From Lepidodermella squamata (lineage: Eukaryota; Animalia; Gastrotricha), in assembly GCA_047495785.1 (NCBI GenBank), contig JBLDXI010000017.1, positions 2,666,001 through 2,730,000 of the forward strand: 64,000 nucleotides of DNA, in the 5' to 3' direction. A model generated the notes under the pieces. That model was not told the DNA's origin. It saw only the letters and a program-made list of their open reading frames with translations, and did no database searches. This document shows positions 20,822 to 48,400 of the stretch, piece by piece (the first letter of the stretch is position 1; every line of letters begins with the position of its first letter). The translations under genes and the position numbers were made by a program.

Positions 20822-23800
20822 ATGTCAGGAATAAGTTGCCCCTCGTTCGCTGCTGTTTCATTGCTTGTTGGCTCGATTTTTCAGCAATCAATAGGGGTAT
20901 GAGTATTAATATTTTCCCGGGATTACAATTGATCTATCATCTATTATCGATCATTAAGCTTCAACTCGAGACGCCTTGCGTTGTACCTAATGTTACGAAT
21001 GGAGTTTTGATAGTTATTGGCACAACCGCCGACGATATGGGAGAATCTGCTCCGTCTACTGTTGTTTCCGGCACAGAACTGGTTCTTTTCTGCGACGAGG
21101 GTTACGCTCCAGTAAACAAGACGATTTCAAGATTTCTTTGTCAAGCTAATCAAAATTGGACGAATCGCGAGGAAATTGCTTGTATGTATTTCTTTTACGA
21201 TAAATTACTTCCAATTTAAAAATAATCAAAAGGTGAACTTTTTTCGCCCGAATTTGCGAGTAACAAGTCCAAATGCGCGATGCCACATGTTGAAAATGCT
21301 ACTCTGTCAAGTTATTCTCGAAACGGACGTCTCTCAACAAGACTTGCGGCTGTCGATTCGGGTACGCGAATTCGAGTTGCGTGCAACGATCCTACTTTCG
21401 AGCTGTCTGGGGGCTCCAGCGAAATCATCTGCCAGGACAATGGGACGTGGTCTGATAGCATAGCGACTTGCCGGAGTATTCAAGAGCGAGAAGCAGTATC
21501 TGTCAAGGTGATGGCTATATCAAGTAATTCCTTTCCAACTGACTTCTTGTTAATGTAATTTTGAATTTTTTTAGCGACAGCTAATGCAACAGATGAGGAC
21601 GATACGGCTGAAAATAATGTTGTCTTGGCGGAAAGTGCTGACGAGCTTGGCTTCTTTCTAAGCGATAAACCAGGTTAGTAATTTTGAGGATCCCAAAGAT
21701 TCCTAAGCTCAAATCGCATTTCAAGCTCTCTGTTACTAATTTTTTAGGTTTTTTGAATATATCTTCAAATTGAGATTGACTTTATATATTTTCGCAGAAA
21801 TGCAAACAACCGAAATTTTTGAATTGACAACCCAGACCCCGCAAAACATGAGCGAGGCAACCTCCCCTGAAGCAACGTTGGAAATTTCGACTACAGCTAA
21901 CTATAGTACGAGTACGTCTCACGCAGCTAACATGACGGTGAATCTAACGAGCACGCAGAGTTTGGAGAAATCAAACGTCACTGAAGCTACAACAAGCACT
22001 TTGTCAACTATTAAGCCGGTTGTAGCTGTTTCTTATCGGAAAGTACCCGGCACGAGTCGGAATTATTCACTGGTGAAAACCTTCCTTATGGCTAGTGAAG
22101 ACCTTATCCCAGCGGATGATTCGAAAGAAGCGCTGCAATTGGCAGTAAATGAACTGTCTACGGAACCGCCGTATGTTAAGGAAGCTGAATCAGCGACACC
22201 CGAACCTGAATTCGAAGGTTCTGGAGGTGAGGAGGATGACTCAGACGATGCAGACGATGCAGAACCAAACAAAAATATACGTCCGATGAATGCTTCCTCT
22301 TTGCAAATCGAAGATTTGTTTAGGTCAATCAGTTCTAGAAACTTGGAGAAGGTTAGACGGCTAACAAATAGAAGCCGCGCCTTCCTCGAGCCAAAGAACG
22401 ATAAGGGCGAAACACCACTACACGTGGCGGTCCAAACTGGCTTTCTGCCTATTGTTGAATGCCTTCTAAATCGCGGCGCTTCGGTTGATGCAAAGGATTC
22501 CAAAGGCCAAACGGCGCTGATCTTGGCGGCTCGATCAGGCCTCGCTCTTGTCGCTGAGAGTTTAATTTACGCTGGATGTCCTCTGGGGGAGAAAGACCTT
22601 GAGCTCAATAGGACGGCTTTGATTTGGGCGCTAATAAATGGCCATCTAGATATCGTGAAGCTGCTAGTTGAAAACAAAGCCGAATTCTTGCAGCCTATTA
22701 CCTTCGATTTAGATCTGCCTATTCACATAGCCGCGGCATTGGGAAAAGCCGATATCGTCGACTTCTTACTCGAGCGGAACAAAACGATGCAAATTTCGGC
22801 GCGAAACAGTAAAGGCGAGACACCGTTGATGGTCGCCGCTTGGAATGGAAAGTTGAACGTGGTCGGGCGGTTGTTGCTGAAACACAAGAGTGAAATCGAC
22901 GTTAAATCGGAAAATGACAACATGACTGCCCTACATAAAGCAATTGTGAACGACAAGTTGGCAGTGGTGAAATTCCTGAGCCGGAACGGCGCTAATGTTT
23001 CTCTGCTTACAACTAATCGGAGGAACTCTTTGCATCTCGCGGTCGATGAAAAAATGCCTCGAATCGCGAAATATCTGGCCTTTTTTGAGCCTAAATTGTT
23101 GGGAACAACCAACGGCAATGGCAACGCCCCATTGTACTTGGCCGCAGCAAGTGGGCAGTTAGATTTAGTGAGATTCTTTCTTGATCGCGGAGCACTAGTC
23201 AACCAAGCTAATGCACTTGGGCGAAGGGCGATCCACGCAGCAGCGGCAAATGGCTATATATCTATTGTTAAAGTTCTCGCGGAAAAAGTGCGATCCAGCA
23301 TCTGGTCCCAATCAGGCCCAGAAGACAATGGTGATATGGCTATCCATCTTGCTGCGCGCAACAGCCATTTCAAGGTGATCAAAACAATAATTGAGCTGGA
23401 CGATCGGCAAGTCAGTGCGGAGAACATGCATAGCCTGATGCCACTGCAATTGTCGATTTTGGCCCGCGATGTTGTCTCTGCTTGCTATTTGGTCGATATG
23501 GCAGCTGACAAGGACGTGCCGGACACCGAGGGTCGAACGCCGCTTGAAGCTGCTTCTCTCTACGGCTTGATAGACGTCGTGAAATGCTTGGTTGATGCGA
23601 AAGCCAACATCAGCAATTCTAGGGCTCTACACTTTGCTGGTGAGTCGTGATTTAATTTTGGGTCAGCCTTTTTAATAATTTTCTTTCAAACAGCCGAGAA
23701 GGGACACGTCGATATAATCAAGTATCTGGTCACTAACGTTAGCATTGATATGCTCGAGCAGCGAGATTCTGTTGGTTCGACGCCCTTGATCTCTGCTGTT

Positions 23801-24336
23801 GTTGCACGACGCTTCGACTCCGTGAAAGCCCTTGTTGAACTCGGCGCCGCTCTGGAATCGGCAACTCATGTCAGCCGAAAAACTCCCCTATGGCTAGCTT
23901 CGTCGCTTGGAGATGTCGCTATCGTCGACTACTTGGTAACACGGGGCGCAAATAAAGAATCAGTTGGCGAGTACGGTAGAACGCCTCTTTTAGCCGCGGC
24001 AGGTAATACTTGTCTATATTGGCTAAGCTTTCGAATTTTAATTTCATTTGATCTTTAGCATCCGGTCAACTGGCTGTGACGAGATATCTTATCGAACATG
24101 GCGCCAACTGGCAAGCTACCAGTGGCGAAATCGATGGATTCAACACAGCGCTTCATTTGGCGGCGGCTTTCGGCGAGACGGATGTTGCGCAGTACCTGTC
24201 AGAGACAAAGCCGGAATTGACTGAAGCTTTGAACAAGCGCGGCTACACTCCTGACCAGTTGGCGCAAAAACTTTGGAACAGCAACATCTTGAAAGCGTCT
24301 TCGATCAACGTTCGTACTGGAAAATTTAAATCTTGA
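20822..24336 (+). CDS. Putatively secreted sushi/CCP x2 - mucin-like stalk - ankyrin-repeat protein (gene C)
   Basis: Leader MSGISCPSFAAVSLLVGSIFQQSIG. Two sushi domains (C..NG..CDEGY..C.ANQNW..C and C..N..C.DNGTW..C), a Ser/Thr-rich stalk with many NxS/T sites, EGSGGEEDD, then ~18 ankyrin repeats to stop 24336. No TM segment seen. Confidence 0.85.
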
Positions 24337-26904
24337 GCTGCGGTTAGCAGCGATGGGCGAAATTTCACAATCAAAGAATCTTTGTTATGCTTGTAAAAAT
24401 TGTTCATACTTTCCATTTTTGTCGCCTTCAGACCACAGCTCAACATGTAACTAGTTGTTTTATACCCAAAAGATAGCTATCAATTGGAAATATTGAAAGT
24501 AATAAACGTGCTCTATTGTTGCAGCTTGGCAAGTACGAAATTATCATTGATTTTAACTGCTTTCGCGAAATGGCGGAAATCTGGCGGAAATCTGGATCTA
24601 AAAGCGAATAATGCTTGCAATCATGTATGATCGAAAACTCACGGAAATATAAGCTCAGGCTATTCGGCCCTTTATATATTCCGTTATTATTTCAGCAATT
24701 CCCAAACATTCATATATCAAAAACTGAAGCATAAATACATTGAGATGATGCGCATTATAATGCTTCCGGTCCATGCTGTTCGAAACCTCCAAACTGGGCT
24801 ATACCTACTATTTCGAAATTCGACAAGTCAAACAGTTACAGTGGGTTCAGTTTCATCCGTTGCTGCCCAACTTAGATTGGATACAGATCGAAGTCATGCC
24901 AGCAAGCCGTAAATTTACATTTTGAATGTAACACTGCCACGATTGGGCAGTCAATATATTCGCGATTTTTTACTTATTTTCCAGGGATTATTCCTCATTT
25001 CTAGAGGATTCTAGAGGAAAGAGAAGCATCCATGAATAAAGTACCTTCATATATAATCGGCTAGCCCACAGAGATGAAGGATCACAGAAATGATGTGCAT
25101 TATTATCTAAGAAAAAATTATCTAATATTATAAATGACCCGTTTTGAGACAAAGAAGTTGTGATGCTGAACCAGGCGAAGTTTGCATAAAACGAGAAGGC
25201 GCCACTTTGACAAAGTGTGCTTACAAAAACTTGATGATCGTAATATGGAAACAAAATTTATTGGAGGTAAATATGATCTACTGGTTCATGTGCATTACCT
25301 AATTTTGACAGATCCCTCACCATGAATTTCCTAATTTTTATTTTGCTGCTGCCTGCCTCACAAGTTCTTGGCTATCAGACAGCAGTGAAGCTACGACGAG
25401 TAAAATACTTTTTCTCTTCTTTGCCATTATTTAGAAGGTTCTGCTCATTATTTCTAGCATCATCAGCAGCATTTCAGCGAGTGTCTAATGCCGCAATTGA
25501 AAAATGGCGTCGTTATTGTTTTGACTGGATCGATAGATGAAGCCTATGTGACACCTCAAGCCGTCAAGCCTGGCACTGAAATAACCATCGAATGCGACGA
25601 TGGACATACCGAGCCGATAACTGCAGCCAATTTGTTCGTCTGTGAGGAGACTGGGCAGTGGTCTGACGCCGATAGCATTTTCTGTTCGTCATTTACAACA
25701 ATGGAGAATATTTTTACGTTCTGCTTTCAACACAGGTTCACCTAGCAATAAAGTTCAGAGGCTTAATTCAAGGCCTCGGCGCTTCTTGTTCTTGCTTCGC
25801 CACGTCTTCTCTCATAATTTTGAGACAACAACGCCGGCGTTTGTGCCGGATGAAGAATTTCCAGACGAGAGTATTGATTACTTTGATGAGTCATCAAGCT
25901 CTGAGCTGGAGACGAAGTTTTTTGAAGCTATTAAAAGGAGCGATCAGCGAGAAGCCAACGCAATTTTTAGCGAATTCAACGGAGTGGTCAAAGCTCGAAA
26001 TAGACTCAATCAATCAACCTTAATGGCCGCAATTGCCGTAGGCTCTGAAGATATGGTGGAATTTCTTCTCAACCTGGGCGTAAACGTTGAACGCAATTCT
26101 TCTTTAATAGAGGCAGGTATGTGAGCAACTCCTATCCTCTTAGCAAATCTTTTACCTGACCAACCTAAATAAATGATTTTGATCTCTCCGATTGATTAAC
26201 ATTTCCTTTTGCATTTGTAGCCAAGCATGGAAATCCTGGAATCGTTGAAATGCTCATCTACGCCAAGTCTAAGCTTCAAGTTTCCGAGAATGGGCGAACG
26301 CCGTTACACTGGGCCGCAGCATTGGGTCATACTGCCGTAGCTGATTTGCTTGTTGAACACGGTGCCAATGTTCGAGCTCAAATGGGTCAAACGGATGACG
26401 AGGGTACAGCGGTTCACGCTGCCATCTCGAATGGTCACGTCGAGACACTTTGCCATCTGCTCGACAAGAAGCCATTTTTAGTTGAATCGGTGAATAAGTT
26501 TGCCGAAACACCGCTAATGTTGGCCTCGCTACTAGGTCACCTGAATATTGTCGGGAAGTTGGTAAAAAGGTACAAAGCTTCGATCGAAGCTAAAACTCCT
26601 TACGGCAAAACCGCTCTTTTGGCTGCTGTTAATACCGATCAGCTGGCAGTTGTCAAGTTTCTGGTATCAAAAGGCGCCAATTTGACAGCCAAGACCAACA
26701 AAAACATAACAGCACTCCACTTAGCGGTTGAGAATCGCCTCTTTTACATGGCGCAGTATTTGCTTCGAGTTGCTCCACAGCTGCTAAATGAAAAGAATCA
26801 CAATAACAGAACTGCCTTCTTCCTCTTCCGTCTCATTCTTCCTATTCTTCCCTCTCTATCTTCCTATTCTTCCTTCTTCCACTCTTCTTCCTTCTCTCTT
26901 CCTT

Positions 26905-26934
26905 AGCGCCGCGCAGGCCTCTGCGCGCGGCGCT
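26905..26934. repeat. GC-rich subterminal hairpin
   Basis: AGCGCCGCGC-aggcctctgc-GCGCGGCGCT: a perfect 10-bp stem embedded in a TC-rich tract ~85 bp from the left junction. Confidence 0.85.
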
Positions 26935-27040
26935 CTTCCTTTTCTTCCTTTTATAGACGAATTCTGGCGTTTCGAGTCGCTGACGAGCCAATCACAAAGC
27001 GACACATTTCAGTTTGAAAATTATTAAGGCGCATTTTTTA
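26932..27040 (-). promoter_or_regulatory. Outward-facing CCAAT/TATA-like module, copy 1
   Basis: Minus strand reads TAAAAAATGCGC...TGATTGGCTCGTCAGCGACTCGAAA...CTATAAAAGGA...AGGAAGAGC. Promoter function is inferred. Confidence 0.55.
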
Positions 27041-29870: not shown

Positions 29871-31660
29871 ATGAGAAGGACGTGCGAACCGTTCATCGGG
29901 ATATTCGCCCACGCTAGCCCCTTGAATGAAGTTAGAAAAAGCCATTACGGTCACCATCACGCCGCAAATTTTTGTGTGCGAGTCGGCAACGGGGAGGAGG
30001 TCAGAATGGCCGAAATGTACTTGTACACGCCTGACCTGTACAGAGACCTCTCTTACGGCTGCAGAGTTCAGCTTCAAGATGGCCGCGTGACCCAGGATAT
30101 GGCTACTCGGGCTCCATACCTGCCGGCGATGGAACAAACAGAGCGTATCGTTTTTAACGAAAGACACCACATCAAAATCCTGCCTTCAATCGAGTCCAAC
30201 GCTATTGACATCACCAATTTTCCGCCGCTGGGTAGTGGATACTTCGTTGACTACAATCACCGTGCTCTTCAGCCACCCGGTGGCAAACAATTTGTTTTGA
30301 ATGTTGCTGGGCGATTCAAATCGTTCACGGTGTGTGCAGCAGCTGAGAACCATGACGAAGTCGCCGGCAATCGGTTGAACGAAAATGGGCGATTGGTGAT
30401 CGTCGGCTTGGATGGCAAGGAAACTAGTAAGTAGAATCAGAAGATTATTATTTATTAAAAATAAATAGGCACGCACCCTTGTCCCTAGTCTAACATTCAT
30501 TCCGATAAATTTATACCAATATGCCAGATGGATGAATTTAAAATATAAAACTGAAAATTAGTAAATTAGCAATACGCCGATTTCTTATAATTTCTGATCA
30601 TTTGTTCGATCCTTTTTGCAGAGATTAAAGTTTGGAACGAAAAAAATTGTGACTTCTTGCATCGAATCCAACAGCAATTCAAAAACAGCGAAATTTGGAT
30701 ATATTTGTTGCAAGCAAAAATAAATGCGGAGGGCGAAATGACTACCTGCGGCCATACGGTATTTTCTTTGAGCAATGGATTTGTTTCGGCTAAAATTCGA
30801 AAGCTGGAGCAAAATGTTGAGAGCTTGTTTGTCCCTCCGCTACAAGACGCCCGTCCGTTGACGGAGCCCTTTCTGTGGGGAAGTTGTGACATTGCACGTG
30901 GCGGACCCGGCGTTGCCGTCAAGAAAACCTACCAGAATTCCAGCTGTTTGGCACTAGCGGCTAGAACTTCGAACCCGCCGACATCGTTCTTCGCAACCCA
31001 GCAGCAACCAGCGAAAATGCCGAAACTGATGGTCGAATCAGCAGGATTTGCAAGCCAAGCCGCCGCTTCGAATGCGGACCCAGGATGCGCTGAATTCATC
31101 AAACTGCTACAAAACAGCACGAAATTAGTTGGTCTTAAACTGCTACCGAAAGGGCATTTGTTTTTTAACAAGGTGAGAATTTATATGCTGGAAAATAAGG
31201 GAATCAAGATATTGACGTTTCCTTATGCGCGTTAAACGAAACTACGGCAATATTTGCATATTCGTTCTGAGCTCACTTTTTTAAATTTCAGCTATTGGTT
31301 TCGAACGCTTACCGCATTTGGAAGGCTGCCAATCTCGGAGCGACGGAAGACGAGTTCCTTGCGTGCCTCCTGTTGTCGCTGAAGGCAGTCGCGAAGGACA
31401 AGGCGCAAGAGGAGGTAACCTGCTATCGTTTATTCGATGTAATGGAAGCGGCGAAGATTAATACGCGCAAGATCAGCTTGCAGGCGATTGATATTGCACA
31501 AATTCTCCCGGCCAGCACTACGACAATCATCGAAACAGAGTCAGCACTTGCGGTAAGAACCTGGAAAAAACAGAAGATGTGTCTATTAAAAAATTATATT
31601 CATAATGTGTTGCATTAGATCTACAACGAATCGCTCCGCGCCCTCGGCTACTCGAAGTAG
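29871..31660 (+). CDS. RPA70-like tandem OB-fold protein with helical C-terminal domain (469 aa)
   Basis: Four in-phase exons: 29871-30426, 30622-31172, 31292-31552, 31619-31660. IVFNERHHI, VLNVAGRFKSF, GKETKIKVWNE and IYLLQAKIN resemble RPA70 DBD-A/B segments (MTFNNETSV, VDIIGICKSY, GKVVTATLWGE, LAIKGARVS) in order and spacing. Gene model is firm; fold call is by eye. Confidence 0.6.
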
Positions 31661-31846
31661 CGCGAAAGGATGTAGCAGGAATAAGTGCGATGGCGGAAAT
31701 GGCAATTTCCTTTCTTGACATCTCTATGCTTTTTTTTTAAAACTTGATTTCTGTTTGATTCATCCAGTTCAATAATAAGAACAATCTTTTTTATATAAAA
31801 CTATAATTTCTTGTTGTCATTTTGTAGGGTAAATTTTATTTAAAAT

Positions 31847-34144
31847 ATGGCATCGCTCACCTCGTCACAGCTGGCTGAGTTCGAAGAAGACAGCGGGTGG
31901 TCGATGGTAAATGAACCGCATTCATCAGTCGCCGCCGCCACCGCCGCAACATTAACTGCTTCACAACAGGCAGCGTTCGAAGACGAGGCTGGTTGGCCGG
32001 TTATGGAATGCAGCGCGAGCCAGACGAATTCGTCTCCTCCGCTAACTACATCGCAAATCGCGAAGCAGATGGCCGATGACACCGATTGGAAGGTCGAAAT
32101 CGCTCATCCGCCTAACGATTGCCCGATTGATGGCGACGACTGCGACGACGACGAAGATGATAGCGATGATGCGCTGTTGTCAGATATTATCATGGCGAAG
32201 ATAACAGAAGTCGTAGATATACAACACAAATGGATCGTAGTTCACGGCGTTGCGTGCGAGAAGATGTTGGAAAGCTTTAGAGCGGTGATATTGCGCGAAT
32301 CTCCCGGCTCTCTCGTATCGTCCCTTCCGCCAATGCCAAAAACGCCGTTTTATCGTGTGATCATCAGGTTTAATGACGAAAATGCGGCGAAAGATTTTCT
32401 TCAGAGGCGCGAAGTTGTCGTTCCGCCGTATCTCACCACACCTTTGCGTCTGTCTGCATTCGCGAAAGCAGATTCGAAGCAGCAATTTCAACTATGGACA
32501 GAGTCGGACTTGAAACAGTTCCCGGACCCTGAGTTCTTCTCGGCGATCAATGCCATCGTACCGCTTGAATATCCTGAACGTGTCATGTGCGGCGAGAGTC
32601 CTTTAGCTCTGAAAGCTGAATTCGCCGATCAATGCAATCGCAGCATTTTCTTCGAAGAGCTGTCTCTTGCTACACGGCTCGAAGATTTGGATGCTTTTTT
32701 TGTCAGCATTTCTTCGCGTGATGACGTCAAAACAATCAAATTGGCAAAGATGCCCAACGCTTTTGCTCAATTCGCCATCGCCGAGTTCCACACAGCGAAA
32801 TCTGCGCAGTTGTTTCTCTCAGGTCGAGGTCGAACGATCGAAATGTCCTGCGGTGGCGAAATGCGACGTGTTCGAATCGAGATGCTAGGCGAAAAGGTTC
32901 GAGGACAAAAACGCTACAAGATAGAAGCAAAATCCAGCATTGCAGACTATCGCACTGTCTACTGCTGGAGCGTTTCAGCTGCCGTCAATCGAGAAGAATT
33001 CGTGGCAAGATTACACCTTGGGCAAGACCTGGCTGCTGCGACGTATTTCTTCTCGCCACCTGGCTCGCCTTATCAGTACGTAGCCGTTCAGTTACGTTCA
33101 TCCGCTTCAGTCGACCAGTTTATCGCCGAAAAAACGCCTCTATTGGAAGATGGCTGGGCCTTGTACAAAGCCGACGAACCGGCCGGGTGTCGCCACGTTG
33201 TGACATACGTCCGGAAGGAGGACACCGTCATAGTGCGCGAAGAGGTGCTGTTTCCTTCTGCTTTGCCCCATCTTCACCGCGAGGCTATTCACATAAGATC
33301 GGCCGCTCATCTCGCCAGCGCTCCTGATGTTCGCCGTCTTGTCGCCTGTTTCTTGCCACACAACGCACCGAAAGTGAATCAGCTGGCTAAACTTGTAAGT
33401 TGAGACCTAAATATGAGAAATTGTAAATCATAGATTATGTTATAGATTTTCTTCTACTATACCGGCGAGTTCGTAGAAAGCACAAAGAGAATCTTGGCGC
33501 AAACGTATGCCGACGTTTGGACGGGGGCCCTAACCGAACTGGACCGGCTGCGACGAGCTCGAACTGGCGACCGATGGAATGTATATTGTCTTTTTAGCGA
33601 AGATCTCATGTGCCCATCGCAAATCGGCGAAATGTGTCCACCCATTCAGCGTCGATTGCTGGCCTTCATCAGCCCGCTCGACGATTCCGCGCTCGACGTC
33701 TCTGGTCTTATTACTGCCGTAGAGTCCGTTGTCGGTTTGATCGGGTCGCCGGTGGACCAAGAAGCTGCAAAACGTCGCGCCCTTCGCTCTGATCCCGGCA
33801 TCAGCAAGCTACATGAGGAAACTAAGAAGAAATTCGGCCTCATTGAAGCAAACTGTGGAAATAGCGGCATCTATGTCCACAGTGATTTAATGGGGCTGGG
33901 TCATATCTATATTGGCCAGTCGAAGCGGGTTCTGCAGCGGATCCAGAAGCACGAGTCCTATCTGAGGACCGTTGACCTCGGCCAGCCAATCACCCGGCAT
34001 GATGTGACCACCGGCCGCCGCCACCCCGTTCTGCCGATCCACTTCGGTATCGTCGCCATTCCGCCGATCGCCGATCTTAAAAGGGTCGAAGCGATGTTTA
34101 TCGACTTGTTATTTCCGGCACTGCTCAACGTCGACAACAAATGA
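31847..34144 (+). CDS. Triple RRM-like - GIY-YIG endonuclease fusion protein (748 aa)
   Basis: ORFs 31847-33403 and 33494-34144 are joined by a 51-bp phase-0 intron (33395 GTAAGT...TATAG 33445). C-terminal SGIYVH...IYIGQS...RIQKH...EAMFI...LN. RRM-like units: WIVVHGV/VIIRFNDENAA, SIFFEEL/FAIAEFHTAKSA, TVYCWSV/YVAVQL. Confidence 0.8.
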
Positions 34145-34962
34145 TGGCTCTATCGCTAATAAGACGCGGTTTTGTACGCATGAATGATAATAAAAACTTG
34201 GTGTAAAAGTAAAATGCCTGTTAATTCGAGTAAAAAACAAACATTTGTATGCCCAATTCTGCTCGGCAATGTGATGATATATGATATTATTAGATGGACT
34301 CGCAAGTTGAATATTTCAATAAAATCACCCGTGATTTTGCAAAGAAAAGGTTTTTTTAATTATGGATTATCGTTGAAAGATTTAAGCGATTGAAATGTCG
34401 ATGAAATGAAAGAGATCAGCGGCGGCGGCTACTACACGGGTCAAATTGCCTTACACTACAATAAATACCAACATAATTGTCTTAACGAAGGCTTTTTTCA
34501 GGTGACTTGATGATACTTTGAAAAGACATTATCGGAACATCGCAAGAATTCGAAATAAGAGAACTGATCATGGCTGAAGTGATTCGAGTAAATTTAACTA
34601 CAGAAATTATTTTACATTACAAGCACTGTTTTTTACAAGTTAGCCCGCCAGAAGGTATTGTTCAAGTAAATCAACTATACTTTAATGCGGCGGATTTTTT
34701 CTTATGACGGAGTACTCAAGTTGATACAAGGAAGTTTTCATAGCGTCTGCGGCAGCTCATTTTATGAGTGTGCGTGTATAGTAGGTGTAATAAATTCGCT
34801 AAGCCGCCGGTATACCAAATAATAATGATGTCAAGTAATCGCCTTGTGCCTTTTCTGTCTAGGTCATCAAAGTCAGCACTTCGCCTATGTTTGTGCAGAC
34901 AATCTTCTATGATGTTATTCAGGATTACTTATGAACTTCATAAAATATGAAAGAAAATATGA

Positions 34963-36790: not shown

Positions 36791-39412
36791 GCAAGTACAT
36801 GATCTAAAATCTGATACAGGTATTATAGCTATAAATTCAGCAAATTTCGCTTGAACTGGTGACAAGAATATTGACATCAGCGATCAAATAGATGGGCTAG
36901 TCTCAAGACTTGTAAGACTGCCAAAGACTGGTTAATGATTAACTACGAATATAACTGCTGAGAAAAAGAAAAGTGCAAGACGAATAGGTGAAGAAAATGC
37001 GGCACCGGGCGCGGCGTGGCGATTGGGGGCTTGCATCAAACGCATTTTTTTCGGCAGTCAGATTCCGGTGCTTTGAGCTGGCCACTTGCAACCATATCAA
37101 TGTTTCACGTTCATTAAAGCGATCGATTTTTAGCAAAAATAGCCACACCTATTGTCGTTCCTCAAGTATTGATGAATCTCTGACGTCAGAATAGAAACAC
37201 TACTGACACCTGTTGCGATAAAACACTAAAAACCGAACAACAAAAAGTTTATAAGCACACTTGCATCTTGAAGCAGCAAGTTTTCTTCCCTTTTCCTCTC
37301 TTATTTTTCTATCTTTCTCTTCCATCTACAGAAAAGTGGCCAGATTGAGATGGTTGAGCTACTCACGGAAGGAGTAATGCCGTTCATAGTCGACGTGCAT
37401 GGCAGGACGGCTTTGCACGAAGCAGCAGCGAACGGGCATCAAGCAGTAGTGCAGCATCTGATGAGCAAAGCATCTTCATGGCTGCGGGTTCGAAGCTTCA
37501 AGCACGATCACGGAGATACACCTTTGACCTTGGCGATTAGGAATGGCCACATGGATGTTGTTCGCACCTTACTTACAGTTGATCCCATCGCCCAACTTAC
37601 GGCACGCAACTTCGATATGGAGACTCCGTTGTTGATAGCTGTATCCAGCGGAAATACTGAGATTTCCTGCTTCCTGGCAAGCACCAAAGCCGGTGCCAAT
37701 ATTTCAGTCGATGATACAGATACAAATGAGAGAACTGCCTTAATCGTTGCGGCTGGTCTTGGCTACAGCGAAATCGTCAAGTGTCTCGTCGATAGCGGTG
37801 CGAATATCACAGCGAAATCTGGTCCCAATAGTGGAAAAATAACATCAGTTCATGCCGCTGGTTAGTCTGGTTATATGAACTTTTGTTGAGTCTACTACAT
37901 AGTTTCGGTTTTTCAGCTATCAACGGTTCCCTCAAGGTGCAGAAGGTTCTGGCGAAATCTGGTGGAAAAGAAGCGCTAAATGCGCTTGATGGCTATGGAT
38001 CAGTTCCATTGTTTACTGCAATCATTTCCAAACAATTCTCGTCTGCTCGCCTATTAGTCGAACTTGGAGCTGATATCGAAGCTAGAACGGCGCGAGGTGT
38101 TACACCGTTGCTAATTGCAGCCGACAAAGGACACAATGAAATGGTTGAGTATCTCCTTGACAAGAAAGCTGATATTGAAGCTAGAGATGCTTATGCCAGA
38201 ACACCTCTCCTCGCTGCCGCAGGTTTGTCAGAAATCACTCATGTGTTTTAGAAGTGCCTAACTCCGTTTAATTAAATAGCATCTGGCCATGTCAATACTA
38301 CTCGGCTGTTGATCGAAAGAGGTGCGAATGCATTAGCAACAAACCAACTCGGTTACTCGGCACTCCACCTGGCTGTTGCTCACCGTCATGCTGAAGTAGC
38401 TGATTATCTTCGCACTGCTAAGCCTGAGCTCATTTCTTTAAAAACAGATGACAAAATGTCTAACAAACAGCTGAACTCTAACAAATTCAAAACTTTGATA
38501 AACGCCGGACGTCCTCGTGTTAGAATCTGACCTTTGATGCGCTGATTATTCTTCGAATTAGTCATGAGGAATTGTTGACATTACGCGTCTTAGCTGATCA
38601 GAAATGGAAAATGGAAAATGATCGCGAAAATAAACACTTTTGTTTGTCAATTTTTTAATTAATCTAAAAATAGCAGTAGCAAAGTAACAAAGGACCAAGA
38701 ATTAGAGCGCAAATAGCAGGTCAATAGTTCTATTCATAGAAGAGTCAATCATCGCGTCATGACTCATATGTCAGGGTACAGGGCACGCTGGAAGTTGGAC
38801 AAACTACTCGGTTTTGCCAATCAGGCATGCGTCCATGATACTGAAGATACCAAACGATTCCTCATCATTAACGTATTGCTTCTCCAATTTACATTAAATT
38901 TAGTCAAAATCTGAGCAGATGCTGCTACTTTTGAAGCTCAAAAGTTGACAAGGTGGCAAACATCACCTAGGTTGACAAAGGCCTGCTCAAGCCTCAGACC
39001 CCGATGCTGTAACCATGGCAACGATGCTGTCGATTGCAATATCATAAAACAATGATCATGATATTGGTTTCAATTTATGAAATTCAACTAACACTATTCA
39101 AAGAAGATAAAATGCAAACTTGTCTTAATGACCTTGAACTTTGGCGCTACTTTCAAATTGTATACCCTCCTTGGCATCGAGGGCTCGAGGGTCGCTTCTT
39201 AAGCCGACGGGGTTAATTGCTCAGTGGAACCCAGACTAATTAACGCCGGTTGTTAATTAGTCAGTCAGAGGTCATAGTCAGTTATCTGCTCTCGGGAGGA
39301 AAAGGTCTTGGCGGCAATTACATGAAAATTACATGTTACATGAGAGTTTTACATCTTATTTACATTATCATTGAGATTGAGTGTTGACTGATATTTCCTT
39401 TTAGGATTTTAG

Positions 39413-42400
39413 ATGATTACACGCTTGTTGCTACTCATTTGCCTGAATTTATTTGGCGGAATCCATGCTGGCTACATCGACTCAACTGTGTATTTGGCGG
39501 CTTCAAATAATGCATTGACCATTCTGAAGCTGATGATTGCCATGGGTGCTGATCCTGACAGTATTGGCCAGGATGGCCAGTCAGCTCTCATGGGTGCTGC
39601 TGCGAATGGCCATCTTGAAACTTTCAAATATTTGGAGTCTCGCGGTGCGCGAATCGATTTTAAAAGTCTTGTGTCAGGCGAGACAGTATTGCACATTGCT
39701 GTCCGTCACGGCCAAGATGTGCTTGTAGACTACCTGTTAAGTAGCAATGGTATTTCGCTGCTAGAGGAAAAAGATCTGAACGGAAATTCGCCTTTAAATT
39801 TGGCAGTAATTAATGGCAAAGAGTCTGTGCTTGATGAATTGTTGGCGAAAAATCCTTCTCTTGAAACAAAAAATCGTTACGGACGAACCCCTCTGCTAAA
39901 TGCTTGCGCGTATGGTCATTTATCGATATTACGCCGCCTGGTTGATGCCGGAGCTGACGTTCTTGCTCGAAGCGGCAAAGAAGATGGTGAAAATACAGCT
40001 GCTCATTTGGCAAGTTATTATGGCCACCGGGAAGTATTGGAATTTCTTATCGAACTTCGACCATCTTTCGTTGATGATAAAAACTCAGCTAATGAAACAC
40101 CACTGTTTGTGGCAGCTTACATGGGCCAGAAAGATGTGGTGGCGTTGCTGATGCCGAAAGGAAAAAAAATGCAGCAAGCTACTGATCGATTCGGTCTAAA
40201 TCCCTTACTTGCTGCCATTAGGTTAGTCTTGCTTAGCCTAAGTGAGGAACTTTCCCTAAATATTTGTTTATTGAAGCTTTGGACGGTTGAATGTTGTTGA
40301 AACCATGAACGGAAAAGAAGGGAGTACATCTGACCGTAGTGCTGCCATCTTTGAATCAGCCGAAGCTATTCATCTCGCTGCTCTATTGGGATATACGGAC
40401 ATCCTTGCGAATTTGATTGCGGGAGATGAAACATTGCTCGAAGCACGCGATATTAACGGGTCATCACCTTTGAATAAAGCATCTTCTCTTGGTGTTATCA
40501 AATCCGTCCAATACCTGATAAGTAATAAAGCGAAGATTGAGTCCGTCGACAAGTTCGGCCTTACCCCACTTCTGTCGGCATCAGCTAATGGCCATGCAGA
40601 TGTTGTGAAGTACTTGATTGAGAATGAGGCTAATGTCAACTTCCGAGGGCCCAATGGGCAGCTTTGTGTTCATATAGCTGTGGCCAATGGTCACATTGCT
40701 GTTTTGAATACAATTTTGAGCTTCCACCGTGAATTGATCGAGAGTAAGAATGACTTGGGCGAAACGTGTCTCCTCTTCGCGGCAAGAGTAGGCCAGGCGG
40801 AAGCTGCTGAGTTTCTTATCGACAATTATCAAGTTGATATAGAATCTCGCGATATGAATCACTTCACGCCTTTAATTTCCGCATCGTTCCGTGGTAACTT
40901 GGCTGTGTTAAAAGTTCTCCTAGGCAGAAATGCAAACCTTGACGCCTCAATATTAGGGGTCGACCAAGACACAGCAATTCATATCGCCAGCCGCCAGAGT
41001 CAAGTTGAGGCCATTAAAATCCTAGTTGGCAATGTGCCCAGGTTGCTTGATACGAAAAATGCTCGCAATAACACCCCAATTTGCGTTGCAGGAGAATCGG
41101 GTACCATTGAGGTAATCTCAGAGCTTCTTAAACTCGGGGCTGAAATTGAAACTAAATGCTTGAACGAATCTACACCTTTAATTTTGGCGGCTGTGAATAA
41201 TCAACCACGTGCCATCGAATTTCTGCTAGAGAAAAGGGCCAACATTTTGGCGAAGACAGGCGTTGATTTCAATGGTAGCACCGCTTTGCATTTAGCAGCT
41301 GAACTAGGCCACAGTGATGCAATGCGAGCACTGTTAAGGAACTCGGATTCTCATATCGTCGAAGCTAGAAATAACTTCAATAGAACACCGCTTTGGGTAG
41401 CTGCTTTTGCTGGACAAGAGCAGTCTGTCAGAGTTCTCCGGTTCCACAATGCTAATCTCGAAGCTAGTGATCTGTTGAACAGGACACCCCTGCTAGCTGC
41501 TGTGTTGGCAAACAAGGCGAATATCGTTCGAATTTTATTGGGAGAGGGCGCAGATGTGAATGCGCTTACCAGCAAGGACGACTTCAGTCTAACACCTCTA
41601 ATTTACGCCGCTAAATTAGGATTCAGCGACGTTATTTCTGCGATGCTCGACAAATATCCTCAGTTGGTTTCGCAAAAAAACCCGGGTAACGATGGCAATA
41701 CAGCTTTGTGTGTAGCTGCTTTTGAGGGTCAGCTGAAAGCTGCAGAAACTTTACTGCTAAGGAAATCACCGACAGAGGGGCGGTGTGAATATGGAAGGAC
41801 GGCCTTGTTAATCGCTGCCGCGGCGGGCCACGTTCCTGTAGTCCAAATATTGCTGACTTCGGGTGCTGACGTGAACGCCCGTGGCGACAATGAACACGAT
41901 CGCGGTAATACAGCCGCTCATTTGGCTGCGAAATTCGGTCATGTCAATGTCTTGAAAGTGTTGATTCGTTCGTCGCGCAGCCTACTCGAGTCAGAGAATG
42001 CGGACCGATACACGCCGTTATGGCTCGCTGCGGACCAGGGCCAGGCTAGAGTTGCTGATTTCCTGCTAACAGAAGGCGCAGCAAGTAGCGCTCAAGGTTC
42101 GCGAGGTTACAGCCCGTTCCTCGCAGCGGCTGCGTCGAATAAACTCGACGTACTCAAAGTCCTGGTCTCTCGCAAGGTCGGCGATTCTTCGAAGAGCAGC
42201 ACCGAGGATGGTGAGAACATGGGAGTACACGTTGCCGCGATCAAGGGAAATGTCGACGTGGTTCAATATTTATTGGAAGGCAAACCAGCGTTGGTCAACA
42301 AAACTAACAAGCATGGTAATTCTCCGTTGATTCTCGCAGCTGCAAATAGCCACGCCGAAGTGGTCGACTTGCTGATAAAGTCCAAGGCCGATCTGGAAGC

Positions 42401-45400
42401 GCCGGGTCAGTTCGGCTGGACAGCTTTATTAGCGGCAGCAGCCTCCGGTCATTTAGCTATGACCCGTCATCTCATCGGCGTTCATCATGCGAATTTCAAT
42501 GCTAAAAGCAACGACAGCAGTCTGGCGGTTCATTTAGCTGCTGAATCCGGTCATTTTGAGGTGGTTGAGTACCTTTTGCGAGCAAATTTTAATGAGCTCG
42601 AGTCGAAAACAAGATCTGGCAACTCGCCACTTTGGCTTGCAGCAAGTCGTGGTCACCTGCGAACTTGCGAACTCTTAATTCGTAATTTCAGTGCTAATCT
42701 AGAATCGACTGGTCAAAGCGGCTGGACCCCGTTATTAGCGGCCGCTGCGAACGGCCATTTAGCGATTGTTGCATCGTTACTTGAGCACGGAGCTAACATT
42801 CTAGCAACAAGTGACGTGAAAACCAGCCGAAATTTCGCTATCCATTTAGCACTGAATAATGGCCATGTGAAAATTGGTGAGCTACTCATTGACTCAAATG
42901 GCAAATTGCTGGAAGCTCGAAACGATTTTGGTTGGACTCCTATTCTTTCAGCTAGCGCTTATGGTCAAGTGAATTCTTTGGATTTCTTGCTTCGTCGGCG
43001 CGCCGACTTGTCCGCCCGGAGCTTTGCAATCGACGGCGGAAACTCAGCCTTGCACTTGGGTGCGATCTACGCGAAGGTCAACGTGCTAACCATGTTATCG
43101 AAGGCGAAACGGGAGCTGCTGAACGCAAGAAATGACAACGGCGAAACAGCGCTGTGGCGAGCGGCTCAACTCGGCAATGTTCGAATGGTGGAAAAGCTGA
43201 TCGAGTTGGGCGCACCTGTCGACTGGCAGTGCCCACTCGGCTGGTCGGCTTTTAGCGCTGCCGCGGCTCATAACCGCGTAAAAGCCGCCAAGGCCCTGCT
43301 GCGTAAGGGAGCTAAAATGGTCGAAACGTTTGACGCAGCCGGAAATAACCCCGTACATCTTGCTGGTTTATACGGGCGAGTTCGAGTCATTGATTTTTTC
43401 GAAAAATCGCAAGTCGACGTGGGTTGCAAGAACAAGTTTCAAGAGACTCCTTTCTGGCTTGCGGCGTATGGCGGGTCCGATGCGCTTGTGGCGAAATTGT
43501 TGAAGGATGGTAATCACAATAATTTTCGAGGTCGGAATGGCTGGACACCGTTACATGCCGCTGCAAGCAATGGGCATATCAGAGTGGTAAAGCGATTGAT
43601 TGACAATGGCTTTTCGATTGATTCTCGTAGTTCGGTCGAAGACCTTTTGAGTGCTCCGATCCACGTGGCTGCATCGTACGGGTACGGCAATATGGTTAGT
43701 TACATCGGCAAAATTGACAACAATGCGCTTGAACTGAAAGACGCGCGAAATAATACGGCTTTTCATCGAGCAGCGGCCGAAAATCGATTAAATGTGGTTG
43801 CTGCTTTACTGCGATCTTCAGCGAATACCAAGGCTATTGGCCAGTACTCATATACTCCTTTTCATGCAGGTTAGTATAATTCTATCAATATCAAGCCCTG
43901 CTGTAATGTGTCTTTTAAGTAACCAGCTAAAGAAAGTAGTTAGCTATGACGATTGAAGAAGATCCGAGAAGCTTCGATTCGGGGGATTACGGGAATCTTA
44001 GCGAAATTTTTAGGTCACGCTGATAGCATTTTCCTGTGTTTAATTTTGCTTCTTATTCCAAGAGTGGAAATCATTCATTAATGCGTTTGTTGGTTTCAGC
44101 TGCTGCTAATGGCCACACGAAGATCATGCAGATGTTTATCGGCCAAAATCCCGATATTCTAAACGCACGAACTTTGACTGACCAGCACTTGGCCATTCAC
44201 ACGGCCGCAGCCCTTGGAAAAGACCTGAGCTTAAATTTTTTGCTGGACACCAGGTCAGATTTGATTGAAGCTCAGGATCGTTATGGAAATACTCCGTTAT
44301 GGGTTGCTGCTTATTCCGGGCAATTTGCCAGCGTGTTATTGCTGCTTTCACGTATGGCGAACGTTGAAGCTCGTGGGCGCTATGGCTGGACTCCTTTATT
44401 AGCTGCTACCGCAAACGATCATGCTGATATCGCCGAATTGCTACTAAAAAATGCTTCTGCCAATGCATTAGCTCGCAGTGATGTGATCTCGGGTGAAAAC
44501 ACCGCGCTACATGTTGCGGCTCAGTTCGATTCTGACGACTCTGCCTCAGTCCTATTGAGTCTCGCGAGGCAACTAGTCGCATTGAAAAATAACAAAAACA
44601 ACACAGCACTGTGGGTGGCTTCATCGCTCGGAAATACCAAGGTCCTAAAGGTCTTGCTTGATTCTGATTCCGATCGGATGATATCGGATGAATCTTCATC
44701 CTCTTCCCCAATTGTTGTTGCTGTGGAGAAACAACAGCTAACCGCAATTCGAGTCTTACTCAGCTACGGCAGTGGTATAGACTCGGGGAAGAAAAACGGT
44801 GAAAATGTGCTTCATTTAGCAGCGTCTGAAGGGTTGATCGAGTCTGGCAAACTTTTGGTTGAAATTCGGCCGGAACTTGTTAATTCTCGTGATCACGTCG
44901 GCGAGACTCCACTTCACAAAGCTGCATCGTCGGGCAATGTTGCTGTGGTGTCGCTGTTACTAAAAAATGGCGCCGATGTTACGATAACTGCGAACAATAG
45001 TTACACCCCATTCACCACCGCCGCTGTTGCCGGTCAAATCGGAGTGATGGAGGAGCTGGTAAATAGTGGCAAAATCGATTTCAAATACCGAGATACAACG
45101 CAGCGGACCCCGCTCTACTGGGCTGTTTTCCTAGGCAGCGTCCCGGCTGTTAAAATTCTGATCGAAAAAGGAGCCGATCCGGAGGATCGAAGCCCGATAC
45201 CGGCCGATGACGGCGCCATGTCAATTCATCTTGCCGCTCATTACGGCCACTTGAATGTCGTTAGTTTCTTAATTAATGTCAAGAAAGACTTGATTGATGC
45301 CAAGTCGAACTCGCGTGAAACGCCCTTGTTTTTCGCCGCGAAAAAGGGCCATGTCGAAGTTGTTCGACTTCTGCTTTCGAAAAATGCGAAGAAGGAAATT

Positions 45401-48400
45401 CGGAGTGCCTCCGCTCGAACGGTGCTACACGAGGCGGTCTTTGCTAATCAAACTGAAGTCGTTTCGGCTTTAATCGAAAACCAGGTCGATATATTAGCGA
45501 CTGCCGAGGATGGAAACACAGCACTTCATATAGCGGCGAAAACCGGGTTCCTACCCTTGGTTAAACTGCTAACCAACGTAATAAAATTGGGAATTAAAAA
45601 TAATTTGGGCCAAACTCCTCTGTGGCTGGCGAGTAAATATGGGCGGTTAGAAGTAGTCGAGTTCTTGAGCGATCGCTCTAATGAAATTGGCGTGGCCGAT
45701 ATTGATGGTTGGACCGCCCTGCACGCCGCTTGCTTACACGGAGAGAAGGCAACCGTCGAATTGCTAATTCGAAGAGGCGCTAATATTTTTGCGAAAAGTT
45801 CGGAACATAAAAACTCCGAGATACCCCTTCACTCGGCTATTCGATCGAAAAACTTGGCTGTTGTCAAGGTGGTTCTTAGCCAGGACGCGAGCAAGCAGCT
45901 TGAAGTTGTGACCCGCAACGGTTCGACTCCGTTATGCATTGCAGCTGAAGTGGGTTCTGCTGAAATTTTGGAGTATCTGCTCAATCAAGGTGCGGCCATT
46001 GAAGCCAAGTGCCAGTTTGAGGCAACTGCTATCATGATAGCTGCTGGTAAAAATCACCTGGCAGCCGTAGAAGTTCTCGCGAATCGTGGGGCTAATATTT
46101 CCGCCGAGTTGCCGTCTTCTTACGGCCGGAGCTCGGCTTTTCACCTTGCAGGTTTGGTATAGGGAAACACGGATCGTTGTTGGCATATAATTTTTCAATT
46201 TTTATTCAGCGAAAAACGGGGCAGTTGATGTTTTGCGTTATTTGTTGCGCGCAAATCCAGCCTTCCTCGACGACGCCAATTCACGAGGCGAAACGCCGCT
46301 GTACATTGCGACAGTTGAGAATCAAATCAACGCGATGGAGTTTTTGATCAGTTCCGGAGCTAACCTAGAGTCGCGTTTAAATAACCGCCCGCCGCTGTTT
46401 CAGGCGGCATCTTTAGGACACGAAGAGGCTGTCAGATTGCTGATAGCTGCCGGCGCAAACACCGAATCCCGTGGTCCTCTCGGACGCACTGCTTTGCTTG
46501 AAGCTGCAGGTTGTTATTTGAGTATTTATCGGATTCAAATATTTAATTGGACCTATAACTTAGGGCAATGTCGAGTGAAAGTTGTGGAGGCTCTGTTGCG
46601 AGCCGGCTGCGATTATATGGCGCGGAGCTATCGTCAGGACTCTGAAAGTTCAGCACTGCATTTGGCTGTCACGAGCCGCTGTGTCGAGGCAATTAAAGTT
46701 ATGACAGATTTACACCCTGAAATGCTGAATTTACGAAACGCAGTGAACCTATCCGCCCAACAGTTGATCGACCGATCTCCTGCGATAAGAAAATCGCTGA
46801 GTTCCGAGCGAGACCTTTTGATTTCGGTTGTTGAATCTGGCGAAGCTTCAACGCTGAGGACGCTCATTCGAAATGGCGCTGATGTATTGACGAAAAAGTC
46901 GACGCATCGAGGTGGCGAAGGTCTGGTCCACTTGGCGATTTCTAGAGGTCATCTCAGAATCGTCAAGCTTCTCTGGGAGACTGATGCAAATTCTCTGAGT
47001 GTTGTCGATAACAACGGCAATACCCCGCTGCACGCAGCTGCTCTAAGCGGACATTCTGAAATAGCCGAATTTTTGCTTGAGAAGGGTGCTAAAATAGAGG
47101 CTCGCAACATATATGGCTGGACACCATTTTTAACAGCGATGGCAGCTGGACAAATGGAAATGGTGAATTTTTTAGAAGAACGTGGCGCTAACATCTACGC
47201 CAGAGCTAATAAAATGGGCAATTTAGAAACAGCTATTCATTTAGCGGCGAAAAATGGTCATGTGAAATGTATGGAAGAATACATGCATCGAATGCTGGAG
47301 AAGAAGAAGTACAAAAAACACGGTTTGCATTAATCAAATTTCGCAGTCGAACCTAGTTTATATTTTAATATATTCCAGGTATCGAGGCGAAAACTTTGCG
47401 AAAAGAGACGCCGCTACACTTGGCATCAGCTAATGGAGCCTTAAAAGTTGTTCGAAATCTCTTACAGCGTCAGGCTAAAATCGATGTGCGAGACGAGATT
47501 GGACAGACTCCTTTCATCGTAGCCGCTGCTAATGGTCAGTTGGATGTTATGCGGTTTCTGTTAGACAAGGGAGCCGATGTTTTAGCGAAAACTTCGACGA
47601 GAGGCAGCGATGGCTTGACGGCGATTCACATGGCCGTTATCAAGGGTCAACATGGCGCCGTTGAGCTTTTGATTCAACGCAACCACGAACTGATTGACTT
47701 GCAGAGTGGTCTCGGCGAAACGCCGCTGTGGCTAGCTGCGTCGCTTGGTGACGAGAAAATCATAAAACTTCTCGCGTCCGAGGTCGATCTTTCAGCGCGG
47801 TGCAACGCCGGACTAACCCCACTGCATATCGCTACACTCCTGAACAGAATTAGCACTGTCAAGTTGTTGATTAACGCTGGGGCTAATACTCAAGACGGCA
47901 CAGCGCAGGATTCAGCGCAGGATTTGCCTTTCCATCTCGCGGCTATTTACGGCCACATTGATTTGATCAAATACTATAAAAGTATATATAAAAGCGTGGA
48001 AGTTGAAAACGCATTAGGCCAGACGCCACTCTGGCGAGCGTCGTATTTTGGAAGGCTCGAAGCTGTTGAAACTCTTTTGTCATTGGGCGCAAGTTATCGC
48101 CAGGCGGATCATCAGGAATTAACCCCGTTAGAAGCCGCTGCCATGAGGGGCCACCTCAGTGTCGTGAAAGCTTTGTCGGCTAAAGGCAGTCAATCAACTA
48201 GCTCTCGATTGAGCTCATCCTCCCACCCGATTTTCCTGGCGGCTGAATATGGCCAGTTGGAGGTCGTGAAATACTTTTTAGACGTCAATCCATGGTTGTT
48301 GGAGGAGAAAAACTCCAACCAAGAGACGCCGCTTTGGCGCGCGGCTTACGCTGGCCAGTTGTCAGTCGCTGAATTCCTAATCAATCGCCGCGCTGCTATC

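Follow-up and report, generated by a model that had tools for sequence, protein, structure and literature searches.

A gene whose predicted product ends in the signature of a GIY-YIG nuclease, and in which nearly everything upstream of that signature has no match in the databases searched, raises two questions: is the nuclease-like segment real, and what would bring it to its substrate? Such a gene lies on contig JBLDXI010000017.1 of the Lepidodermella squamata assembly GCA_047495785.1, in the 64,000-nt stretch of DNA (2,666,001–2,730,000, forward strand) which was analysed here as a whole and is called the window; all positions below are counted from its first nucleotide. The same window contains spliceosomal introns of 51–195 nt, a phospholipase C and giant ankyrin genes.

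Gene model and codon usage

Two open reading frames (31847–33403 and 33494–34144) share one frame, and an earlier note on this DNA had joined them through a 51-bp intron into a single protein of 748 aa. This part of the note held up well: the predicted intron has GT-AG ends and contains in-frame stops, and the spliced product comprises 748 codons, 516 from exon 1 and 232 from exon 2. The elements of the gene are as follows.

31820–31827, + strand: TTTTGTAG, acceptor-like site, 19 nt 5' of the ATG
31847–33394, + strand: exon 1, 516 codons without a stop, beginning at the first ATG after an in-frame TAA
33395–33445, + strand: predicted phase-0 intron, 51 nt, GTAAGT...TGTTATAG, AT-rich, three in-frame stops
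33446–34144, + strand: exon 2, 232 codons followed by TGA, first in-frame ATG at residue 55 (33608)
34189–34194, + strand: AATAAA, 45 nt past the stop codon

The predicted intron begins with a GTAAGT donor and ends with a TATAG acceptor, and the frame is open from exactly 33446. Other introns of the window are also of the GT-AG type (about 57–195 nt) with a T-rich end in CAG or TAG, a likeness of style which supports the gene model, in which 33395–33445 would be removed by splicing. Codon usage was scored with a model trained on other genes in the window. Exon 1 reached +0.19 bits/codon in the gene frame versus −0.22 in the two other frames, and exon 2 reached +0.13 versus −0.2 and −0.3, while the intron fell to −1.03 bits/codon in the gene frame with an accompanying drop in GC. 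Both codon usage and intron style of the gene are host-like. Judged from its sequence, the locus is a real two-exon eukaryotic gene, and the model holds. The AATAAA downstream of the stop codon is a possible polyadenylation signal, and TTTTGTAG upstream of the ATG may represent either the end of a 5'-UTR intron or a trans-splice site.

The GIY-YIG motif set of exon 2

The nuclease-like segment occupies the end of exon 2, where the following features were located (residue numbers refer to exon 2, with those of the spliced product in brackets).

33863–34141, + strand: divergent GIY-YIG nuclease-like domain, residues 140–232, extreme C-terminus (~95 residues)
33872–33874, + strand: Tyr of GIY, Y143 (659), counterpart of I-TevI Y6
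33908–33910, + strand: Tyr of YIG, Y155 (671), counterpart of Y17
33938–33952, + strand: Arg165 and His169 (681 and 685), equivalent to R27 and H31, within the predicted first helix
34088–34090, + strand: Glu215 (731), counterpart of E75
34127–34129, + strand: Asn228 (744), equivalent to N90 (the Asn kept in the UvrC-like lineage)

The roles of functional residues in GIY-YIG domains were taken from PMC2853131 and PMC1564403. The 'GIY' and 'YIG' boxes lie towards the N-terminus of a domain of ~100 aa and are separated by about 10–11 residues (PMC1564403), and in I-TevI, Y17 is the proposed general base and E75 binds the metal (PMC2853131). The order in the candidate is GIY-x11-YIG-x7-R-x3-H, followed later by Glu (in VEAMFI) and then Asn. 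Its two boxes span 33866–33916, and the 11 residues between them reproduce the spacing of Cho. Arg165 lies eight residues past the Gly of YIG and His169 four residues later, the same register as in I-TevI, UvrC and Cho. Glu215, which follows the His by 46 residues (44 in I-TevI), shares one MAFFT column with the Glu of Cho, UvrC, I-TevI and EndoII and forms part of an E-x3-I-x4-P-x2-3-N helix motif resembling that of UvrC and Cho. Asn228 follows this Glu by 13 residues, compared with 12 in UvrC and Cho and 15 in I-TevI; its assignment was made manually and differs from the MAFFT column. The ~45 residues running from His to Glu resemble no reference enzyme.

How often such a set would arise by chance was estimated with the pattern G[IV]Y-x9-12-Y[IV]G-x7-R-x3-[HY], used both alone and extended by the later E and N, which was derived from Cho, UvrC and I-TevI and formulated once the candidate was already known. 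Position 33866 was the sole match in all six frames of the window, and in control DNA (180 kb from T4 and E. coli) the same pattern matched I-TevI, UvrC and Cho only. For this post hoc pattern, no match was obtained in 200 shuffles, with an analytic chance of 2.8e-10 per residue, and the composite motif would be expected ~0.003 times per proteome of ten million residues. The GIY, YIG, Arg, His, Glu and Asn listed in the earlier note are thus all present where it had placed them, in a combination far beyond chance.

The note had also expected a GIY-YIG profile match, which was found in Pfam but stayed below threshold. The gathering score of PF01541 (GIY-YIG) is 22.6 bits; exon 2 as a whole scored 13.3 bits (E = 0.11) and the domain alone 15.0 bits (E = 0.032), with 20 residues aligned. 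Other families of the GIY-YIG clan gave no Pfam match, nor did searches of NCBIfam and of PDB sequences return any. Smith-Waterman scores against shuffled sequences gave z values of 5.4 for Cho, 4.5 for T4 EndoII, 4.2 for I-TevI, 3.9 for SegE, 3.4 for UvrC and 2.9 for YhbQ, all six enzymes aligning to the same candidate segment. The best-scoring profile was PADLOC PDLC04925 (PDC-S14), at 15.3 bits (E = 0.0018) for the candidate, and true GIY-YIG domains matched this profile over the same positions with 19.3, 16.6 and 13.5 bits. Alignment by hhalign to a six-sequence GIY-YIG reference profile yielded 17% probability (P = 0.0015), and our own HMM, built from 13 GIY-YIG domains of T4 and E. coli and dominated by Seg proteins, gave the candidate 2.5 bits. 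GIY-YIG domains adopt an alpha/beta fold in which helices flank a three-stranded antiparallel sheet. A single-sequence AlphaFold model of exon 2 had a pLDDT of 36, and Foldseek matches obtained with this low-confidence model (best E = 0.095, TM at most 0.19) were noise. A weak match to phrog_19106 (E = 0.0073) was left uninterpreted, as no reference GIY-YIG enzyme matches that family.

Motif statistics, pairwise scores against shuffles and the PADLOC family support the presence of a C-terminal GIY-YIG nuclease-like domain. We see roughly an even chance for the fuller reading, namely that this is a lineage-restricted two-exon gene ending in a strongly divergent GIY-YIG nuclease domain of ~95 residues, which belongs to the UvrC/Cho/homing-endonuclease type and retains all its catalytic positions. 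Such a domain would presumably cut or nick DNA by the usual one-metal mechanism, in which Glu215 would hold the metal, Tyr155 and His169 would activate water, and Arg165 would stabilise the phosphate.

It is unlikely, in our judgement, that the motif is instead a remnant or a coincidence and the protein a young orphan or pseudo-enzyme devoid of nuclease activity. Such an explanation would account for every profile method having remained sub-threshold and draws on the fact that, with no homologues, selection cannot be shown; it is at odds, however, with the rarity of the composite motif estimated above and with six functional positions that are all intact and in register. Furthermore, the 748-codon open frame and its host codon bias indicate that the gene is not a decayed one.

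Relatives, known GIY-YIG systems and neighbourhood

Exon 1 was compared exhaustively with 1.84 billion representative proteins using phmmer and had zero matches, exon 2 being covered by narrower searches. A word-indexed search of 5.8 billion proteins returned nothing for exon 1, exon 2 or the domain alone, scans of viral, metagenome and prokaryote-genome contigs found no relative, tblastn against phages gave only E values of 3 or more, and look-ups of the exact product produced no match. No sequence homologue was found, and within the reach of the searches run the gene is a lineage-restricted orphan with no detectable relatives.

The closest resemblance is to Cho and UvrC, enzymes of bacterial nucleotide excision repair with an N-terminal GIY-YIG domain. 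Cho had the best pairwise score and an identical register (G-[IV]-Y, 11 residues, Y-I-G, 7, R, 3, H), both enzymes share the E-x3-I-x4-P...N helix motif with the candidate, and identity is ~22–25% over roughly 100 residues. Unlike them, the candidate is eukaryotic and intron-containing, carries the domain at its extreme C-terminus and lacks UvrB-binding, RNase H-like and helix-hairpin-helix parts. In I-TevI, I-BmoI and the T4 Seg proteins, a catalytic cassette of ~90 residues is likewise tethered to a separate targeting region, and equivalents of I-TevI Y6, Y17, R27, H31, E75 and N90 are all present in the candidate. However, its domain order is the reverse of the I-TevI type, it resides in neither an intron nor a phage, it has no Pfam match to a zinc finger, NUMOD or helix-turn-helix, and most T4 Seg proteins bear no similarity to it. 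The PDC-S14 profiles (PDLC04925 / PDLC04923) cover the YIG-Arg-His segment, positions also matched by Cho, UvrC and I-TevI. PDC-S14 is a candidate defence family of prokaryotic proteins of about 300 residues, of which the candidate matches 22–39 residues, pointing to shared superfamily motifs rather than family membership.

Few GIY-YIG architectures are known from eukaryotic nuclear genomes, these being SLX1, ANKLE1/LEM-3 and the Penelope endonuclease. ANKLE1/LEM-3 resembles the candidate in being a eukaryotic host protein whose GIY-YIG nuclease lies at the C-terminus, behind a long non-catalytic region, but neither exon of the candidate has a Pfam match to an ankyrin or LEM domain, and the ankyrin repeats of the window belong to separate neighbouring genes. 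SLX1 is also a eukaryotic GIY-YIG nuclease, and its targeting depends on a non-catalytic partner. Its GIY-YIG domain is N-terminal, lacks motif E with its Asn and is followed by a RING/PHD-type finger (PMC1564403), whereas the candidate has a C-terminal domain, retains the Asn and lacks a cysteine-rich finger (no CxxC). Penelope-like elements, compared here by family features (in part from PMC1564403), resemble the candidate in having a C-terminal GIY-YIG domain in a eukaryotic nuclear genome, and their endonuclease has been assigned to the homing-endonuclease/UvrC-like GIY-YIG lineage (PMC1564403). They differ from it in their upstream reverse transcriptase and CxxC-type cysteine motif, and in repeats or extra copies, of which the window has none for the candidate.

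These likenesses bear on the idea that the gene is a stranded or domesticated nuclease of a selfish element, whether from a Penelope-like retroelement, a giant virus or a free-standing homing endonuclease, an origin which we regard as improbable. The C-terminal position of the domain with its Asn kept, as in the homing-endonuclease/UvrC-like lineage, would suit this origin, as would the orphan status without cellular orthologues and the location between fast-evolving ankyrin gene arrays. Against this, no reverse transcriptase or other element domain was detected in exon 1 or the tested neighbours, no direct or inverted/terminal repeats flank the gene, no second copy occurs within the window, the viral, phage and metagenome collections hold no relative, and codon usage and intron style are of the host type. 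Scans for tRNAs and Rfam families gave none, and a scan for prokaryotic promoters and terminators remained at background level. The 'adjacent OB-fold protein' that the earlier note had suggested as a working partner corresponds to a multi-exon gene (29871 to about 31660) without any Pfam or PDB sequence match, so this suggestion found no support.

Exon 1 and the possible targeting of the domain

Three parts of exon 1 may bear on how the candidate domain would be directed.

31850–32104, + strand: three copies of a ~20-residue acidic repeat, at 31850–31918, 31946–32014 and 32036–32104
32120–32170, + strand: Asp/Glu run, residues 92–108, closing the acidic N-terminal region
32192–33394, + strand: central ~400 residues, with proposed RRM-like units at about residues 116–210, 256–352 and 361–450

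In an alternative model the locus makes two products, the intron being kept so that a protein of 518 aa ends at the TGA at 33401–33403 and the GIY-YIG part starts separately from the ATG at 33608 (178 aa). We consider this very unlikely. Codon-usage support is indeed weakest between 33446 and 33607 (+0.04 bits/codon), a run of 54 open codons is not unusual (among random windows, with genes included, 17% show no stop), and TATAG could act as a trans-splice acceptor in an operon-bearing organism. Nevertheless, a consensus GTAAGT donor in matching phase precedes the open frame by exactly 51 nt, the frame becomes open with the base that directly follows the AG, neither of the two other frames scores better than the gene frame in this interval, and there is no room for a promoter.

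For the single spliced product, the earlier note had proposed three RRM-like units in the central region, a proposal that no test run could substantiate. Exon 1 had no match in NCBIfam or among PDB sequences, and none to any Pfam family at E ≤ 10, the RRM clan included, whether searched whole or as three separate units. The RNP1 octamer (a PROSITE-style pattern on strand 3 of the beta-alpha-beta-beta-alpha-beta RRM fold, in strict and loosened forms) was absent from both exons, and similarity among the three units was at chance level (z = 0.6–0.9). A single-sequence AlphaFold model of exon-1 residues 116–516 had a pLDDT of 33, too low for its secondary structure to count as evidence. A full-text literature search found no architecture combining GIY-YIG and RRM, and none of the 11 papers using the two terms mentioned the pair in its title or abstract. 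Recruitment of the nuclease by RNA or ssDNA had followed from the three RRMs and is left unsupported along with them. We therefore strongly doubt that three RRM folds bind RNA or ssDNA and bring a GIY-YIG nuclease to an R-loop or element transcript, even though by eye the three segments alternate hydrophobic strand-like and amphipathic helix-like stretches, their best local alignments bring together one 'strand 3 - helix 2'-like piece of each, and residues about 370–430 adopt a strand-helix-strand-strand-helix order in the low-confidence model.

By analogy with other GIY-YIG enzymes, the rest of the protein (~640 lineage-specific residues) may still aim a small, unspecific catalytic module, by binding a DNA structure, a protein or RNA. 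Each known eukaryotic GIY-YIG architecture has informed genome maintenance or mobile DNA, and a further one, with ~640 unmatched residues, would amount to a new way of aiming the cassette and might double as a compact programmable nickase scaffold. In its boldest form, to which we give the slimmest chance of all the readings considered, the gene would found a eukaryotic nuclease family not described so far, its GIY-YIG cassette being directed by a novel nucleic-acid-binding region (perhaps of degenerate RRM-like units) and controlled via the acidic Ser-Gln-rich repeats. If true, this would point to a structure-specific nuclease linked to DNA damage or RNA and without a parallel in SLX1, ANKLE1 or Penelope. 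Known as a sequence from one locus in one genome, it has at present the value of a lead rather than a discovery.

The three acidic repeats with their Ser-Gln sites are newly described in this analysis. Their consensus is LT-x-SQ-x-A-x-F-E-[DE]-[DE]-x-G-W, with Ser-Gln inside every copy, and four Ser-Gln sites fall within the first 70 residues (positions 7, 39, 58 and 69). Such a very acidic N-terminus may function as a docking or phospho-regulated region; residues 1–115 have a pI of 4.1 and a net charge of −24.

Residues and profile evidence for a probable GIY-YIG domain

Three things are observed for the candidate, a predicted two-exon gene: how the gene is built, that its catalytic residues are intact, and that no relatives were detected. 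By analogy with known enzymes, we give roughly even weight to its being a GIY-YIG nuclease, in which the catalytic cassette would be aimed by an attached region and acidic repeats would serve regulation or docking.

Predicted structure of the candidate gene
31847-33394, + strand: exon 1; ATG 31847 preceded by an in-frame TAA, frame ending at TGA 33401-33403
33395-33445, + strand: predicted intron; GTAAGT at 33395, TGTTATAG ending 33445
33446-34144, + strand: exon 2; second frame, in the same phase as the first, ending at TGA 34142-34144

Exon-2 residues 141-169 read G-I-Y, x11, Y-I-G, x7, R, x3, H, with V-E-A-M-F-I lying 46 residues past the motif His and an Asn 13 residues past the motif Glu, five residues before the C-terminal end. 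Among 13 annotated references (phage T4 I-TevI, I-TevII, SegA-G and EndoII; E. coli UvrC, Cho and YhbQ), Cho has the same motif register, while I-TevI and UvrC share it except for a first spacer one residue off; the Glu helix form E-x3-I-x4-P-x2-3-N is common to the candidate, UvrC and Cho. GIY, YIG, Arg and Glu define the superfamily; the Asn is a typical mark of the UvrC-like lineage, and SLX1 lacks it (PMC1564403). Residues Y6, Y17, R27, H31, E75 and N90 of I-TevI/I-BmoI are functionally critical (PMC2853131).

A pattern derived from I-TevI, UvrC and Cho, written once the candidate had been seen, matched the six-frame translation of the window at position 33866 only, none of 200 shuffles, and, across 180 kb of control DNA from T4 and E. 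coli, only I-TevI, UvrC and Cho. Its analytic expectation is 2.8e-10 per residue, or ~0.003 per ten-million-residue proteome. Smith-Waterman alignments to six enzymes fell on one common candidate segment every time (z against 500 shuffles: Cho 5.4, EndoII 4.5, I-TevI 4.2, SegE 3.9, UvrC 3.4, YhbQ 2.9).

The C-terminal GIY-YIG domain claimed in the earlier note has its full motif set in register; as a profile match it stays below threshold, Pfam PF01541 giving 13.3-15.0 bits (cut-off 22.6) with only 20 residues aligned. Alignment by hhalign to a small reference profile returned P = 0.0015 and a probability of 17%, and a home-made HMM of reference GIY-YIG domains was useless for the candidate. 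PADLOC family PDC-S14 gave the candidate 15.3 bits (E 0.0018); over the same profile positions, true GIY-YIG domains belonging to other families reached 19.3, 16.6 and 13.5 bits. With scores this alike, the candidate behaves like an outlying true member. A very diverged GIY-YIG domain, short of the curated membership threshold, is the probable reading. The low profile scores would suit an inactive remnant or a coincidence, but the intact catalytic residues and so rare a pattern would not, and we consider this reading unlikely.

As judged from sequence, the candidate's architecture matches none of the tested families. It is not Penelope because it carries no RT, nor ANKLE1 because it has no Ank or LEM domain, nor SLX1 because its domain is C-terminal, contains the Asn and is accompanied by no zinc finger; the DNA-binding modules of homing endonucleases are also missing. 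The best alignment was with the Cho/UvrC/I-TevI branch, to which the candidate may be likened in its working too. In a full-text literature search 11 papers contained both GIY-YIG and RRM, none of them with the two together in title or abstract.

Genomic neighbourhood

The window is eukaryotic and does not look human; tRNA and Rfam scans of it gave no matches.

Neighbouring genes
1864-14134, - strand: giant multi-exon ankyrin-repeat genes, on one side of the candidate
16146-18406, + strand: AAA+ ATPase gene with AAA plus AAA-lid domains and short introns (e.g. ~57 nt at 17552-17608)
21770-27000 and 37350-53815, + strand: very large ankyrin-repeat genes of many exons, flanking the candidate
29871 to ~31660, + strand: upstream gene, a multi-exon orphan (at least three exons) with coherent GT-AG introns 30427-30621 and 31173-31291

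Ankyrin-repeat genes occupy more than half of the window on both strands, with single ORF pieces of up to 1331 aa, and are divergent paralogues rather than recent duplicates (sole DNA self-match 206 bp, 73% identity). A PRISE-like Rossmann-fold reductase (408 aa, intron-less; 56689-57915, - strand) is followed by a phosphoinositide phospholipase C (60066-62867, - strand), whose 933-aa ORF has EF-hand-like, X and Y domains.

The upstream gene ends ~190 nt before the candidate's ATG on the same strand. Nothing was found for its earlier "OB-fold" label, because it had no Pfam or PDB sequence match. A nuclease stranded by a mobile element would share its GIY-YIG domain with Penelope and homing endonucleases; the 29-35 kb region has no second copy elsewhere in the window, no terminal repeats bracketing the gene were found, and we regard this origin as improbable.

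The region attached to the domain

Exon 1, analysed apart from exon 2, had no match in Pfam, NCBIfam, PHROGs, PADLOC or PDB sequences and no relative in a word-indexed search, and phmmer, run exhaustively over 1.84 billion representative proteins, gave zero matches at E<=0.001; everything beyond the GIY-YIG motif rests on a single unconserved locus. Three RRM units had been proposed here. Each alone gave no Pfam match at E<=10, the RNP1 octamer was not found in them, strict or loosened, and their mutual similarity was no higher than that of shuffles (z 0.6-0.9). AlphaFold models of exon-1 residues 116-516 and of exon 2, run on single sequences for want of an alignment, had mean pLDDT of 33 and 36, respectively, too low to tell either way, and Foldseek with the exon-2 model returned noise. 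The RRM reading is thus unsupported, though at the level of fold still conceivable, and an RNA-guided nuclease acting through RRMs seems very unlikely.

The N-terminus carries a feature absent from the earlier list:
31850-32104, + strand: acidic repeat of ~20 residues in three copies (residues 2-24, 34-56, 64-86), LT-x-SQ-x-A-x-F-E-[DE]-[DE]-x-G-W

Four Ser-Gln sites fall within residues 1-70, an Asp/Glu run follows the repeats, and residues 1-115 have a pI of 4.1 and a net charge of -24. ATM/ATR-type kinases typically act on clustered Ser-Gln sites, and proteins typically dock through short acidic-aromatic motifs; the repeats look like a docking or kinase-target region, which we offer as a lead.

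In every characterised GIY-YIG enzyme a small catalytic cassette with little specificity of its own is placed on its substrate by an attached region. By analogy, the candidate's cassette would cleave DNA phosphodiester bonds by a one-metal mechanism, the central ~500 residues would provide targeting, and the acidic repeats might mediate regulation or docking.

Gene model

The predicted intron is AT-rich and 51 bases long, three stops interrupt its reading frame, and the exon-2 frame is open from the first base past the intron AG. Removing these bases yields 516 + 232 = 748 codons, in agreement with the 748-aa product of the earlier note, splicing being predicted. Codon usage was scored with a model trained on twelve further long ORFs from the window.

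Codon-usage score (bits per codon)
Exon 1: gene frame +0.19; other two frames -0.22, -0.22
Exon 2, first 54 codons: gene frame +0.04; other two frames -0.21, -0.12
Exon 2, past residue 54: gene frame +0.13; other two frames -0.20, -0.30
51 intron bases: gene frame -1.03; other two frames -1.28, -0.43

Introns of neighbouring genes are GT-AG, ~57-195 nt long, with T-rich CAG or TAG 3' ends, a local style that the predicted intron fits at its short end. Given the open frames, intron signals, codon usage and local intron style, the two-exon model is the most economical reading; two separate products, each frame having its own stop codon, are most improbable. An AATAAA lies 45 nt past the candidate's stop codon. 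Soon past the upstream gene's end, 19 nt 5' of the ATG, an acceptor-like site, TTTTGTAG (31820-31827), could mark either the end of a 5'-UTR intron or, for an operon-like gene pair, a site of trans-splicing.
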